From the NCBI GenBank assembly GCA_000708835.1, contig DF237289.1, positions 35,816-99,815 on the forward strand: a stretch of DNA of 64,000 bases, given 5' to 3'. Position numbers and translations under genes: made by a program. Below the pieces are notes generated by a model, which was not told where the DNA came from, searched no databases, and was given only the letters and a program-made list of their open reading frames with translations. Positions 44,331-52,317 of the stretch are shown piece after piece (the stretch's first letter is position 1; each line of letters starts with the position of its first letter). Origin of the DNA: Klebsormidium nitens (taxonomy: Eukaryota > Plantae > Klebsormidiophyceae).

Positions 44331-47300
44331 CTAAAGCTGAAGCTTGAAGTCGATGTAGTTGAAATTGACATCGCCCGAGTCAAAGACGAGGCGCACCAAA
44401 TGGGGCCCCGCACTAATGACAGTCTTGGTCACCACAGTTGAATCGGAGAAGATCTGCAAGGATTGAGGAAAAAGATGCTCAAAGACTTATGCATGTGGTT
44501 CTCGACCGTGTTCGAGTGCCAAACTGATACGACGACAGTGATGCATCCGAATAGATACCATGTTCATTCCAGCAAAGTAAACTTAGGCCACTGGTAAGCA
44601 TCTGACGTCCCCCGTTATCATAATCTGCCGAAGTCGGCCGATGAGCTGTCAGACTATCCAACTCAAAGAAACGTAACCAGTCAGTGTCGAGCCACTTCCG
44701 CTTCAAGGTTCTTCTGGTCTGATGTTCGTATCCGAGCTGTGGGAATTGTCGAACACTAGGGGTTGGACGCTGGCATCCAGATGCTGGTGCTCCCAGGCCA
44801 ACGACGAGGTATAAAGCCAATAAAGTTCGAGAAGATCAGAGAACCTTCGACCGTCAGGAGAGGCCACTTTTGGACAAATTCGGGGACTGAGCCATGAGTG
44901 TTGCGCAGTCTCTGACCTGCCAGCTGCCCATAGCCGGGAAGACGACCGGGCCGGTGATGTCTGCCCCGTCCACCTCAAGGTGCGCCTGCTTGGGGTTGGT
45001 CGAGTTGCTGGCCGTGCGGAACGTAATGCTGTACAGGCCTGCCGTGGCGAACGTTACGTCGTACTGCAGCCACTCGTGGGGCAGGATCATGCCGACCTGC
45101 AGGAAGGAGGGGCCCCCAAATCACACCGACGCCTTCTGATTCTTGGAGTTGCTACCAAAATGGAGCAATCTGTGAGATGAACGTCTGCACTTCTGCAGGT
45201 TGATCAAGTCAGCGTCTTCTGCAAGAGTCGGGGAGCACGCCGAGTAATGATTTTCCTAGTGTTATCGTAAACGGCCATGGCCATGGGGATCAACCAAGTA
45301 ATGAGTAACCTCTTCCTTCTCCAAGCGGTGCCCAACTCGCGATGCTAGATTCTTTCCATGTAGAAAGGAGAGATTGCCCACCATGCATCCGGCCTCGACG
45401 CCCTTCCCCGGGACGACATCCAGAGCGGCTCCCACGTCCACGTCATCCCCGTTAGTGCAGTTGTTCAACCGTGCGTCATCTCCGAAACTGCAAACAGAGA
45501 GGTCGGTTTCAATTCACGCTTCGAAACTGCGTTCTGCAATGTGCTTTTGGGCGAAGCCTCCTGAAGTAAAGACTCAATAGCACGAGGCCTCAATTCCGCC
45601 GAGCTGCCACATCTCAAGTGCCCTCTCCAATTTTCTACATTCGGATTTGTATTATAGGGTATCCCACTCCTTAGTGATTCGTTGTTGCATTGTTTCGTTT
45701 TCTTTTGTATCCGATGCAAAGGGGCAGGATGTAGAGGAGACTTGTGAAAGAGGCTCTCCGCTGATTACTCACGCGTTGCCCTTGGAAAAGTCCGAGTACC
45801 CGATGCCCTGTCCCCCAGCCCGGTAGTTCTCAGCTTCGAGCCGCCCGGGCAGCACCGTCACGTTCTTTCCCGGGACGTAGGGGGCAACGGAAAGGCCCGA
45901 CACCTTGGCCTCACCCACCAGGGGCGAGAACAGGACGTTGAGCAGACCGGTCGTCACCGACGTGCTGCAAAAACGAAGGTCAAGATTTAGGTTCAAAAAG
46001 CAAAGGTTGCGAATCTGCCGGAAAATGACTTTGCACAGGCGTAGAGTACGCAACGCAGCGAACGAAGTGGGGCAATAATCAAACGGCCGGCTTGATCGAC
46101 ATGAAAGGCAGCTGCTTTCCCGAAGATACTTCGACGTCAGCTTACGGGCCCTTCGACAAATACAGGTCCGCATGCGGAATCGGACATCACCTAAGCTGAC
46201 TAATATGGCAAGATTCATACAAAGAGCGGCTTCATCTCAGATCTGGCCTGATACTACTTCTAAAGAACTCACGTGCGGGTCAGAACGAGTGCCCGGTGGT
46301 TCCCCCCGGTGGCGTTGAAGACGTCGAGCGCCGAGATCTCCTCCCGGCCGTTGATGAAGACGTCGAAGACGCGCTTGAGCGACGCGTTGAACACCGTCTC
46401 CGCCTCGAAGATGCTCACCACGTAGCTTCCGCTGGGGACCGGAATTTGGTACGAGAAGTTGGCAGCGCCGTACCGCTCCTTCTGATACAGAGCCTGGAGA
46501 GACACAAAACAGGAAGGTCACGTACTACGTTTTGTATCCGTGCTGTCTGCAAGATTTGCCTCGGTTGTCAGTCCGAAGTCTGGTCGCAGGTCGCTAGGGG
46601 CCTAAACTCAAGCGAGTCTGTTTGAAAACCATGATTGAGGTCACGCCGACGCATTCTTACGCCCCAATCAGCAGCATACCCTTGATTCTGACCTCGCAGA
46701 AACACAGTTGGTAAGTGTAGCACTGAGACGAACTTCTGCGCTCGACGGAGACGAGCCACTTGAGGACGTTTTGCATACACCGTAATAGATGGAAGAAGCA
46801 AGCTGGCAAAACATGAGAAATTGCAGCACAGGTGACTTTTCCGGATGTTATACTGTGCTTCTCTCCTTTTCGAAGATACCTAGAGATGCTTACCTGGTCG
46901 GCCGTGCCGGTGAAGGTGAGCAAGTTGGTCAGCATCATGCCCCCCACAAAGTAGTTGTCTGCCGCAAACACCGTCCCGTCGGAGAGCGTCAGGTCCAGGC
47001 CCGACCCGCAGTTGATGGCAATGCTCGCGTTTCCTGCGGTGCCGTTAGGCGCGCTGTTTGGCAGCACGGTAATCGCACCAGCCGTGGTTCCGTTAGCCGT
47101 GCCGTTTGGCAGCATGGTAATCGCACCAGCCATGGTTCCGTTAGCCGTGCCGTTTGGCAGCATCGTAATCGCGGCCGCGGTGGCGTTTGCCACCCCGATA
47201 CTGGTGGGCGCGGCCGCCGAGGAGTTGGAAAACACGGCCAGGGGGTCGGTGAAAACGGCCACTGAGGACGTATTCACATTGAAGGTGTAGGGCAGCGTGA

Positions 47301-50300
47301 AGTTGCCGGTCTGGGGCTTGGGGTTGACGGCAATCCCCTGGCCCCCGAAAGTGATCCGGTTGATGCGGAAGAGCTCTGTGGCGGGCAGCGGGGTGCCCTT
47401 GGCCAGGAAGACGAAGTGGAGGGAGACCACGCCGGAGCGCTGCGTCTCGCCGGAGCCCCACCTGCAGAGGGGACCGCGAGGGGATTGTTAGTCCTTGCCA
47501 GCCCAATCGTAAACTTCGCATGCTTGGCGCTCTTGAATAAGCAGGCGCCTCGACCGCTCCAGCACGAATCTCGAAAATCGCGTTGCACAGCAACATGTTC
47601 TTTTCGATATCATCGCAGAGGCAATGTCTAGGTCGAACTCCTCGCTTTCTTGTTGAGAACCCGCACTGACGGCTGCAAACTTAATGTCCAGCACTGACCG
47701 ACGGCTTCGATTCATACAGCCACGCAGCCTTGTCTCTTACTTGGAGGTGAGGTTGCCGTCGAAGGCCATGCTCTCAGTGAGCTGGGACCCGCTGGAGCTG
47801 GCGGAGGCGGCCCAGCCGGAACGGTCGAGGAGCGCGCCCTGCCCGTCGAGCGCGTACATCTCGTGGATGGACCACCACTGGTACTCGCTCGCGCCCGCCT
47901 GCACTCAGAAACGGTTCCCGTGAGTGGGGCTGGAAAACGACAGATCTACCGAGCTCGCTGCATGGCTCAAGGGTCCTTCTCTAGAAACGACAATCATGCC
48001 CTGTACAAATCCAATGATTGTCTCTAGTAAGAAAATCTGGAAAGACATACTTTACAATGCGAATGAAAGGAGCAACAGATCAAGTAGCCCGGAATTTAAA
48101 CCACGCCTTTAGTACATCGAAGTTGGGTCTTCACGAATGCTGATATACTAAGGCACACTTGCTCGCCCTTGGATTATGCTGCTTCTCACCTGCACAATCT
48201 TGATGAACCGGGTGGTCACAGGGGCGGGGAAGGTGATGGTAACAAGGGACGAGTCGCCCTTGCCCGACAGCACAGAGTCGGAGCCGAAATTCCTGCCGTC
48301 ATCCGACACAAAGATGATGTAGCTGCGAGGGTAGTCGCCGGGGGAGCCAGTCGAGTTGAGGAGGAGCTTGGAGACGGTGGTGGGGACGCCGAAGTCTAGG
48401 ATGAAGTACTGGTTGGTGTCGAACACGCCCACCGTGAAGTCCCTGCAGCCAAAAAGGCGGAACTGTTTTAGCTCTTGAAAAGTCTGGAAGAGGTTTACCT
48501 CGTTGCATATCTACAAACAAAATTCGATTCTGGAGAGGGCGAGTGAAGCGCTGGACAGTTGTTTTTCAGCAGCTTTGGAGTCAAGGCTTTCCTTGGCGAG
48601 TTGCACACAGTAGCCTATGGTAAAGGAGCAGAAACTTCAGACCTTCACAGCATGTGATGCAACTGACTGATGTAAAGAAGTCGGAATGAGGCTCTAATCA
48701 GCAAGACTTTCAGAAATCATCTCTATCAACACCATACCCCTTCTCTCAAGGCTCACAAATCCAGCACGCTCTGCCAGGTGCCCACCTGTAGGTGGACCAG
48801 TTGCCAGTGCCAGCGATGTCGCCGCGCGCGATGCGCCTGCCGGTTGGGGAGTTGACCCGGACTTCAAACGACCCAAGGGATTGCAGCGGGGTGGCCATGC
48901 CTGAGGAGGCTCGCACTGTGATGCTGTCAATGTTGTACAGGTTCCAGCCGTCGTAGCGCACGGAGGTCCCGTTGGTGATGCCAGCCAGGTCCTGGAAGGA
49001 AAAGAGGGACGACGTACATAAGTGGGTGAACGTTGTGTCAGGGTCAGACGTGGTGAAATCAAGGGAGTTCTCTGTTCTTGGAAAGCGTTTGGGAGGAGTG
49101 ATGCGCATAGAATCAGTGAAAAGCTAGAAGGTACTTGCATGCAAAGCCCTCCCACAAGATTGCAAAGAGAGCAGGAGGCCATTCATGTTGAGCTGGTGTG
49201 AAGCTGAAGATCAGAATCAAGGAGATGTACAGCTCTGTATGTTTGACTGAGACATTTCTCACCAGGCCTCCAGAGACGTCGAGAGTGGTCTGGTTCTTAA
49301 GGGTGGTGCCATTCAGAGCATCAGTGTTCTCTGCTTCCCACACTGAGGGGTTGAGCACGGCATAGCTGATGCTGTCAGTGGACGTGTCCTTGGCTGCGGA
49401 GGTGACATTGCTGGAACCCACCACCTGGAGCACAGTAACACAGTCACTACAACTGTGCTTCAGAAGTTGGTACCTGGTTTGCATGCTTAGAAAAGGAGAC
49501 TTTCCTGGACGATAAGAAGCAAAGTTACCACCTGCTTTTGGATGCCTCAAAACAGAATGCAGAAAACTGTTCTCTGGGTCTTTGGAACTTGCCTTGATGA
49601 CAAAGTTGTATCTGCCGCTGTTGAGAGGCGCAAGCGGCGTGTCCACAGTCCCATTGCAGGGGGAAAGAGTGGTCAGCCCGATGGACAGGTTGCTGCCGGC
49701 AGTTTCATAAGCAGAGATAGTGGCACCGCTGCAGGAAAGAAAGGAACCACAGGTAAAAAAGACAGCTTGTATGTAGTGCCAACCTTGGCTTTCAAGGGAT
49801 ACTCTATCAAGTTGTTCATCAGATTAGACTGTTTGGAAGGCGGTACTCACTTTCTCCGTCTTAAGAGGTGAAGAAGCCCTGAACGATTGTCATGTTCAGC
49901 GGAAGGAGAGTATCACGTCATAACTTGGAATTTGCAACCACTGTATAGAGAGTGAAGGCACACCTGCAGCTGGCTTGATCCACCCGGTAGTTGACAGTGT
50001 CTCCCCAGGTGAACACGGTTCCAGGGAGGGGCCAGGCCAGCAGTGATGCCAGGGGGTCAGTGGGAAGGCTGATGTTGACTGCAGCAACACTGCTCACCTG
50101 CAAATCCAATAAGAACATGCATCACTTGGTGGCAAGGGGAGGGGTCTAAAGAAAGACAAATGTCGATTGGGGGGGGAGCGAAGCAAAGAAGAACTCTACT
50201 GGCAATCAACTTGGAAAGGTTCCCCAGTTAGCCCTTTCCTGTTCAACGTGCTTCGACTTGCAAGTTGCAACATAGTCGACCGAGCAGCGCAGAGCAGAGC

Positions 50301-50613
50301 GTTTCAATAGGACCCATCTAATGCCACAGGTTATAAACACTTGTTGGAGGATTTCCACTTGGAGGGACTCACAGACAATAACATTTTGCAATTGAGGCTA
50401 TCCTCGCAAGAGGACTCTGCTTTCCCCAGCATTGCAGCTCACTCAAGCCACGCAATATAGAATGGTCACTGAAAGAATCAAACGAAGAAAGGAAAGGAGT
50501 CATCCTGAGCCACCGAAACCACAGTAAGCTGAGCTTACCAGCTGGAGCACCAACATCCAGCAGACAGTGCAGCTGGCAGGTCGCATTTTCCTTGTAATGT
50601 TGCTGGGCGCCAT
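44331..50613 (-). CDS. Secreted non-catalytic carbohydrate-binding protein: signal peptide, Ig-like region, CBM6 (with inserted F5/8C), repeat linker, malectin, CBM6-like domain
   Basis: The signal is MRPASCTVCWMLVLQLVSSVAA. Domain motifs are WEAENT...TGNWSTY (CBM6), YFILDFG...DYPRSY...SDDG...RFIKI...WWSIHE (F5/8C), INCGS...ADNYF...LYQKERYG...RVFDVFING...AKVSG (malectin) and LEAENYRAGGQG...EWLQYDV...FNYIDF. Exon phases are consistent, with one GC-AG intron. Confidence 0.88.
47038..47180 (-). repeat. 48-bp (16-aa) coding tandem repeat x3, AITMLPNGTANGT(M/T)AG
   Basis: The plus strand shows GCCGTTTGGCAGCA(T/C)GGTAATCGCACCAGCC(G/A)TGGTTCCGTTAGCCGT repeated. Confidence 0.9.
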
Positions 50614-52317
50614 TATGGAGCAGCTTCAGATTGCACAGGAACTTGAAACCCAGAGTCTTTGGTGGGCTGTGCAGCTAACGTAAGCCCGATAGCAAGCAAA
50701 CAATTGTACACCTACTAGGGAGCGCTGCTATCCCTCTGGCGAAAATGGATGAAGACGAAAATCTTGGAGCAGAATAGAGCAGGATAGAGAAAAGGGCCAG
50801 CAGGTTCTGCAATGGCTTCTGTCAAAGCACGCCGTGAAATAGGAACCCATTGACCACTCGACGCGATAAGTAGCAGAGGCTACCTAGGTACTCTAGAGTC
50901 TAGAGGCTAGCCGACAAGTCTCTGTCGCAGCTCAATGCTCTTGATCAGACTCAAGCTGTTTCAATGATGCTGTGGACTGCGGCGCCGGCGACTCGGTCGC
51001 AGACGGCGTTTGAAATTCGGTTGCCGATCTGCTGAGCTGGTTCCGTATCGTTCCCCCATCGAACGACCTACAACAGCCAACTGCAGAATCGGACGATAGT
51101 TCGGCCCTCCAACTGTACCTCGCGCTAAGTTGACAACGGGTAGATCAACCGCCGCGTCATCATTCAATTTCTTTGGTCGCCCTGCTTCTCTGGATAGCTC
51201 CCGGATGCTCTCGGGTCATCAGCCCACGCCCGGGGCAGTTGCCAGTGACGGTGAGAAATAAAACCGTCTGAAAGGGAGACCCATTTTAAGTCAGAAATGG
51301 AACCCGGCCGGCCGCTTCGGTGAAATGCCGGTCATGCCAAGCGAATGGTATCTACCCCGGTAGTACTTTCCCGGCCAAATCGACCGCCACGGTAACTGAG
51401 GGTTTGCTGCCGCCGCATAGGCGGCCGCGACTGCACACAGGCAAGCGCGGCCGCCGCACCCGACCAGCGCAGCGGCCGGCGCGTACGTACGTGGCCGCGG
51501 GCGCCCATGCAAGGGAGAAACCTTCTCAAAAACCTTCATCAGTTATGCAAGCTTAGTCGCACGCCCGCGGCGCGCCGCACGCGCGGCGGCCGTGCGTAGT
51601 AAGTAGTCAAACCATGTTGTGCTCCCGACTCTCCCGTCAGACTCGTATTCTTATGCACCTGCATCACTTCATCAACCCTTTTCAGGACGGCGCCAGGAAC
51701 CTGTTCTGACAATCCTTTAATTTGACAACCTGAGGGGGCAAGAGAGGGGCAAGGGGGACAATCTGAGACTCCAATGCTCTAGGAACCTGTATGGAGAAGA
51801 TGTGTTGTTGAGGCTTTCTGAGGCAACATGGCGCATCTGCAGGATTTCATTGACCTAGAAAGCTTGGGAGACTCAGCTGGTAAGTCATAAGCACTCTTTC
51901 AGAAGAAGCTCGAGTCCGAGTAGGACTGACAGTCTGTTTCAGCAAGACTCGACCATGAACAATATTTCTATTGAAAGATTTTAAGACGTAATGGCGAGGT
52001 GACTGTTGCACAAAAGACGGCACGATTTGAGGTGGCATCAGTCCTTCACAGCTCCACTTCTTTCAAGGCTTGTGCAGCCAAACTTGACACATGTAAGAAC
52101 TCATCAGAAGGCTCCCATTATATCTCCAGTCATGTCTCCGCTTGCATCCTAGCATTATTCAATATTGGAGCGGTGTTGCAGAGTCCCTGATTGCCACCTA
52201 CGTAACCAGAATCAAACCAATTTCAATCATGATCAACCCATCTCCATCAAACCACAGTGCTGATAATTCTTCACAGGACCTGTGCTACCATCGCTCACGT
52301 CCGGCAGAAAAACAGCT

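Follow-up and report, generated by a model that had tools for sequence, protein, structure and literature searches.

A candidate composite lectin module in Klebsormidium nitens: a circularly permuted discoidin domain nested in a CBM6 domain

Natural circular permutation and domain insertion in the same protein are together a textbook rarity, of which swaposin is the standard case. Plant aspartic proteinases contain swaposin, a permuted saposin known there as the plant-specific insert (Ponting and Russell 1995, as related in PMC3320104); in the same account its accepted origin is permutation by duplication, with the C-terminal half of one repeat joined to the N-terminal half of the next, from the four saposins of prosaposin. 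For carbohydrate-binding modules (CBMs), a natural circular permutation is described between two β-jelly-roll families, CBM36 and CBM60 (Montanier et al. 2010, J Biol Chem 285:31742, as cited in PMC13552848). The locus considered here lies in a stretch of 64,000 nucleotides from the streptophyte alga Klebsormidium nitens (GenBank assembly GCA_000708835.1, contig DF237289.1, positions 35,816 to 99,815 of the forward strand), referred to as the window, in which a 13-exon gene on the minus strand encodes an 837-residue protein. Residues 138-413 of this product form a 276-residue unit (window 49358..47347, minus strand) which, with good probability, is one composite lectin module: a permuted discoidin (F5/8 type C, F5/8C) domain within a complete CBM6.

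The gene is intron-rich and occupies window 44334..50613, with its start ATG at 50613 and its final codon at 44334; all features given below in window coordinates are on the minus strand. The unit is spread over exon A (49424..49263), exon B (48991..48786), exon C (48442..48190), exon D (47898..47741) and exon E (47461..46894), the splice sites of which were set from sequence. In the product, a CBM6 N-part of 107 amino acids is followed by an F5/8C C-part of 94, a linker of 8, an F5/8C N-part of 36 and a CBM6 C-part of 31; this order of segments had been claimed in a sequence-only reading of the DNA, and the translated spliced product has the same order.

The CBM6 N-part begins at the end of exon A (49263..49358) with VLNPSVWEAEN in a stretch that, on translation, aligns with the N-terminal strands of the bacterial CBM6 of P0100, and the joint between exons A and B is present in the RNA contigs discussed below. 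Exon B (48786..48991) continues the N-part; on its own it matches the Pfam CBM_6 profile (PF03422) at positions 25-88 of 125 (E 2.2e-8, 34.9 bits against a cutoff of 28.9) as well as the Protein Data Bank (PDB) CBM6 entries 2v4v and 1gmm. The head of exon C (48424..48442) finishes a split Arg codon and then, by translation and CBM6 alignments, supplies the strand DFTVGV, the last host strand ahead of the insert. The remainder of exon C (48190..48423) holds the discoidin C-part (FDTNQYFILDFG ... RFIKIVQ); exon C alone matches Pfam F5_F8_type_C (PF00754) at positions 34-111 of 127 (E 2e-11, 44.5 bits against a cutoff of 28.2), and it has no PDB sequence match at E up to 0.01. The final strand of the C-part (AGASEYQWWSIHEMYA) lies at the start of exon D (47851..47898), as placed by translation and by the canonical-domain profile introduced below. 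It is followed by the translated 8-residue linker LDGQGALL (47827..47850), which runs from the old discoidin C-terminus to the old N-terminus, and then by the discoidin N-part (DRSGWAASASS ... AFDGNLTSK) at the end of exon D (47741..47826), which matches the canonical-domain profile. The final seven residues of the N-part, WGSGETQ, are in the head of exon E (47440..47461); they are placed by the same profile and fit the array consensus TRWxTGxxQxxG. The CBM6 C-part (RSGVVSLHFVFLAKG ... LFRINRITF; 47347..47439) then provides the last two host strands.

The permutation of the discoidin is evident against a canonical-domain profile of 136 positions, built from 200 canonical discoidin domains excised from tandem arrays. 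The native unit matches this profile twice, with residues 109-202 on positions 42-133 (E 7e-33) and residues 208-248 on positions 4-44 (E 6e-10); the two matches are complementary and cover one domain once, yet positions 42-133 precede positions 4-44, the reverse of the canonical order in which the N-part comes before the C-part. Once the sequence is re-ordered, a single match extends over positions 4-131 (5e-45, 141 bits), a score inside the range of 127-157 bits that independent canonical domains reach. The orthologue in a related alga (L001, below) shows the same swapped-order behaviour, the unit has all seven residues that are near-invariant in the array alignment, and no further discoidin pieces occur in the rest of the 837-residue protein. 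Judged by these profile matches, the discoidin is a permuted variant with one domain's worth present exactly once, and the signal of permutation is far beyond chance; the break falls at the loop before the Q(Y/W)F..D(L/F)G strand, where the sequence-only reading had put it.

The host domain is complete in sequence as well, its last two strands included. Without the 138-residue insert, the CBM6 parts total 138 residues and align over the junction with the contiguous CBM6 of P0100 (E 1e-7) and of P0051 (2e-4); the C-part is aligned by MAFFT with the last two, C-terminal strands of P0100, of P0051 and of the protein's own C-terminal CBM6, and 38 residues follow the W of the TG.W motif, compared with 37-38 in 2v4v and 1gmm. 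An AlphaFold model of the P0100 domain (P0100:55-190; pLDDT 80, and 85-91 in the relevant region) matches the solved CBM6 structure 1gmm with TM scores of 0.83/0.90, and also 2v4v; in this model the insertion point corresponds to the turn that connects strand 99-108 with strand 111-117. The alignments and the homologue model agree with the earlier proposal that the discoidin is nested in the CBM6, as it sits between the strands DFTVGV and VSLHFVF of an otherwise complete domain, at a hairpin turn. The strand before the insertion point begins just after the TG.W loop, a part of CBM6 cleft A; the insertion hairpin should therefore lie at the end of the sandwich opposite cleft A. The EAEN motif and the W of the GNW motif are both present in the nested CBM6.

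The gene is expressed, and its transcripts carry the exons in the order read from the DNA. In 20 public runs from eight studies, about 0.26-0.44 of the words sampled from a 3.6-kb stretch are present, a share taken to be roughly the exonic fraction of that stretch. The RNA nature of the public runs is only a guess in itself; contigs from four runs of four studies (X1, X3, X4 and X5), placed on window 45000-50900, lack the introns at canonical splice sites and must therefore originate from spliced transcripts. The same eleven joints are found in each of the four, those inside the unit being, after cut shifts, 47461/47741, 47898/48190, 48442/48786 and 48991/49263, with CT..AC ends on the plus strand. 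The five minus-strand exons are joined as the sequence-only reading had them, and its statement that the four junctions are in phase also holds: all four introns are GT-AG, and the frame stays open across each junction without a stop. In these spliced contigs there is neither another exon order nor any extra exon between the five unit exons. No joint that skips exons C and D is present in the contigs of the four runs; such skipping would preserve the frame yet delete the CBM6 strand DFTVGV.

With both flanking introns in phase 2, exons C and D make up a symmetrical cassette (window 47741-48442), whose 411 nt, or 137 codons, come very close to a single discoidin period. The cassette is offset by 7 codons upstream of the domain boundaries (window 47741-48442, 47431-47461); exon C therefore opens with a host strand (R/DFTVGVFDTN) and exon E with the end of the insert (K/WGSGETQRSG); the plain shuffling of exons into an intron leaves such an offset unexplained. 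The intron 5' of exon A (window 49425-49592) is GC-AG, not GT-AG (GCAAGT...CTCCAG), in agreement with the RNA contigs. Run X1 also contains a 262-nt contig of depth 4 within the intron after exon E (window 46620-46881), which suggests some unspliced transcript.

The arrangement proposed from these results is a complete CBM6 sandwich that would carry a CBM32-like discoidin in the hairpin that links its third-last strand to its second-last. The old discoidin termini would be joined by the 8-residue linker, and the new termini would lie at the opened loop; since a cut loop yields two adjacent ends, a domain permuted in this way would be able to plug into a tight hairpin, and since the insert is tethered at both ends, the two domains should keep a fixed mutual orientation. 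It is plausible, as the sequence-only reading proposed, that two sugar sites would be fixed in one rigid unit. The most likely origin would be a one-period stretch, out of register with domain boundaries, taken from two tandem discoidins of bacterial type and placed in a CBM6 coding sequence; by analogy, the permutation would have come about by duplication and insertion, as proposed for swaposin. That a single out-of-register graft made a permuted lectin inside a lectin, a rigid two-site composite CBM which the alga has retained under selection, is considered about evenly balanced between being right and being wrong.

The relatives of the insert were sought with exon C. An exhaustive library search returned 870 relatives, of which the best 150 matches underlie the results given here, in a ranking that favours multi-domain arrays. 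The top relatives are long proteins with two to eight tandem discoidin domains, one of them with 38 matched stretches, and unit residues 111-248 align as one block, without large gaps, across the boundaries between neighbouring domains in dozens of array proteins; each array starts with a lone N-part and finishes with a lone C-part. The top array match, P0002, is bacterial by its gene neighbours MacB, RND and ExbBD. The metagenome proteins nearest to the discoidin C-part are 43-55% identical to it by tblastn; a domain scan of four of the metagenome loci identified a 3-keto-disaccharide hydrolase domain, ThuA, HEAT repeats and a C-terminal F5/8C in two proteins (L016:2488-6276 and L013:257-3931), HEAT repeats and F5/8C only in L005, and an N-terminal F5/8C only in L018. 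By this company the discoidin part is of bacterial type; the permutation is most simply explained by descent from a tandem pair, although this is short of shown.

A different account of the origin, and of the origin only, would have the nested permuted module pre-exist in bacteria and arrive in the alga ready-made by horizontal transfer. The nearest discoidin relatives are indeed bacterial, some of them containing ThuA (L016 and L013), as is P0002; however, none of the best 150 of the 870 library matches has a nested or permuted discoidin, the order being canonical in all of them, and in a search of this kind bacterial proteins more than about 45% identical to exon C would be listed while nested copies below that level would be missed. 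A metagenome scan with exon C gave 16 loci, none of them nested, and in the 14 whose open reading frame (ORF) was usable (L005-L018) there is one canonical domain each; an Atlas shape search with the permuted proxy model described below returned no CBM6-nested match. Ready-made transfer is considered rather unlikely on this record, though it is the strongest of the alternatives.

Upstream extensions in P0043, P0051, P0121, P0056 and P0004 that appeared CBM6-like were found on inspection to be ordinary discoidin N-parts. Separately, an ESM Atlas cluster from Planctomycetota consists of 498-residue proteins with Pfam PSD1 in all members and F5_F8_type_C in 24%; it aligned to the permuted proxy over 121 residues in permuted order (TM 0.75), while all other rows aligned over the C-part only (88-93 residues). 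On this structural alignment the cluster may represent an independent bacterial discoidin-like domain with permuted order.

The fold of the insert was approached through a bacterial proxy, P0002:343-476, an array slice in which a C-part, a linker and the N-part of the next domain follow one another; it is 44-51% identical to the alga. AlphaFold, given a 32-row alignment, predicts this slice as one compact domain (pLDDT 96.4, pTM 0.90), and Foldseek matches the model to galactose oxidase domain 1, the CBM32 of AlyQ and other CBM32/discoidin structures over about 96-98 of 134 columns; the partial coverage is as expected for an order-dependent alignment of a permuted fold. The model shows that a one-period, out-of-register slice can close on itself, which falls short of proof for the algal fold. 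This bears on the idea that the discoidin halves pair with the halves of a second molecule by three-dimensional domain swapping, which would make the unit a dimerisation device. The order of C-half, short linker and N-half is also seen between neighbouring domains of arrays, as that idea would have it, but the proxy slice is predicted as a compact monomer at the pTM just given. In discoidin domains the two termini adjoin, as is established for the C domains of factors V and VIII; 8 residues are consequently enough for a join within one chain, and the host holds the ends of the insert about one hairpin-width apart, which favours single-chain closure. Swapping is therefore regarded as improbable, well below ready-made transfer.

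The evolutionary record of the unit comes from related algae. The spliced product of the gene is absent from the database, and all-against-all and word searches gave only single-exon ORF fragments from related algae, corresponding to the open frame of exon E and to exon C, with none for exon D. Two of these exon-sized fragments, P0017 and P0156, led to two loci: L001, a contig of a JGI metagenome, and L021, a Logan contig, which are collinear exon by exon with the window gene and hold the same 13-exon gene. The sequence-only reading had raised the prospect of the same permutation in bacteria and in other algae; it is present in these two related algae, and among the sequences examined no bacterial case was found. 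The unit has 276 residues with zero indels in the window gene, L021 and L001, and its identity to the window gene is 93% in L021 and 80% in L001. Across the three orthologues the ratio of nonsynonymous to synonymous substitution rates (dN/dS) of the unit is 0.12-0.17 at a synonymous divergence (dS) of 0.30-0.78, with values of 0.06-0.24 for the four domain segments taken singly. The 8-residue linker is the least constrained segment, with a dN/dS of 0.37 up to about 1, and is the sole relaxed part. The Asn/Thr/Ala-rich linker downstream of the unit is indel-rich and only 56-61% identical between the orthologues.

Purifying selection together with the absence of indels is a strong argument against the unit being a decayed relic, in which the insertion would have disrupted the CBM6 and the two discoidin halves, unable to fold, would persist as a tolerated spacer. 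Such a relic would accord with the results that neither exon D nor the opening 45 residues of exon E, taken alone, has a match in Pfam or, by sequence, in the PDB, and with the change of a possible cleft-A residue. Purifying selection, however, acts on all four domain segments at dS values that reach 0.78, and the unit has stayed free of indels in three genomes, unlike the true linker just downstream; moreover, the two matches fill the profile with no overlap, and once de-permuted the sequence scores as genuine domains do. Decay is accordingly the less credible even beside domain swapping, and is thought very improbable. An assembly or gene-model artefact with mis-ordered exons is refuted by the same order in the spliced contigs of four studies and in two independent assemblies (L001 and L021), nothing having been found in its favour.

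Several points nonetheless weigh against a composite lectin module that arose from arrays. The proxy is a bacterial homologue, and AlphaFold may have packed together halves that naturally belong to different domains; the integrity of both folds in the algal unit, like their interface, is inferred. A tree made with the domain in re-ordered form has too little resolution to name a donor, with the algal clade on a long stem and weakly placed beside single-domain ThuA-HEAT-F5/8C proteins; it does not resolve descent of the insert from an array from descent from a single-domain protein. In the host, all three orthologues have Arg (window 47347-47375, LFRINRITF) where the MAFFT alignment places the first Asn of the C-terminal N-x-(N/D) motif, an Asn conserved in P0100, in P0051 and in the protein's own second CBM6. 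This Asn is presumed to be a ligand-binding residue of cleft A; from the alignment, cleft A may be altered and the host CBM6 may not bind sugar in the usual manner.

The whole product begins with a signal-peptide-like N-terminus, its sole strongly hydrophobic stretch, which is followed by a domain of about 105 residues without assignment, the nested unit, an NGT-repeat linker, a malectin domain (E 2e-16) and a canonical CBM6. There are 27 N-glycosylation sequons, and neither a catalytic domain nor a membrane anchor was found in the 837 residues. To judge by these features, this is probably a secreted, heavily N-glycosylated and non-catalytic protein with a role on the surface or in the wall of the algal cell, where it would bind or cross-link glycans multivalently. 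Downstream of the unit, the linker includes a tandem repeat of ITMLPNGTANGT-like units with N-glycosylation sequons (window 47040-47160), a region rich in indels between orthologues; every RNA contig breaks in it (47114/47134).

Full-text searches, in a library that leaves most subscription journals outside its coverage, found neither a permuted discoidin or CBM32 nor any CBM nested within a CBM6 reported. If the proposed reading is true, this would be the first permuted domain of discoidin/CBM32 type that could be traced, together with a CBM nested in a CBM, and therefore a new CBM architecture; it would also be a rare case in nature, and a clean one, of permutation and insertion originating together. 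The evidence is unusually clear for such a case, combining complementary profile coverage, homologous arrays that contain the permuted order as a continuous run, the confirmed mRNA, and three genomes in which the unit is under purifying selection. The unit would provide a natural template for the engineering of rigid bivalent lectins, with the opened discoidin loop and the accepting CBM6 hairpin as sites that tolerate such changes, and it bears on how bacterial-type lectin domains may be reworked after entry into a streptophyte alga near the land-plant lineage.

Set against the known families, the nested CBM6 is like other CBM6 domains (PF03422; 1gmm, 2v4v) in that its N-part and C-part make a 138-residue domain aligning end to end; it differs in being interrupted by 138 residues at a hairpin, and in having Arg for one canonical C-terminal Asn. 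The discoidin resembles the canonical bacterial F5/8C domains of tandem arrays and of ThuA-HEAT C-termini, in its 44-55% identity, in the repeat length of about 135 residues and in sharing both the near-invariant residues and the motifs DYPR.Y and WWSI.E; the canonical bacterial domains examined have their N-part first and are neither interrupted nor inserted, while the algal copy is permuted and nested. CBM36 and CBM60 are two free-standing families, whereas here the permuted domain is nested and the families are others. The closest known precedent is swaposin, which is likewise a permuted copy of a domain known elsewhere in tandem arrays, inserted in another domain; swaposin is a four-helix lipid binder in an enzyme host, whereas the algal insert is an all-β lectin sandwich in a lectin-domain host, and its homologous arrays are bacterial.

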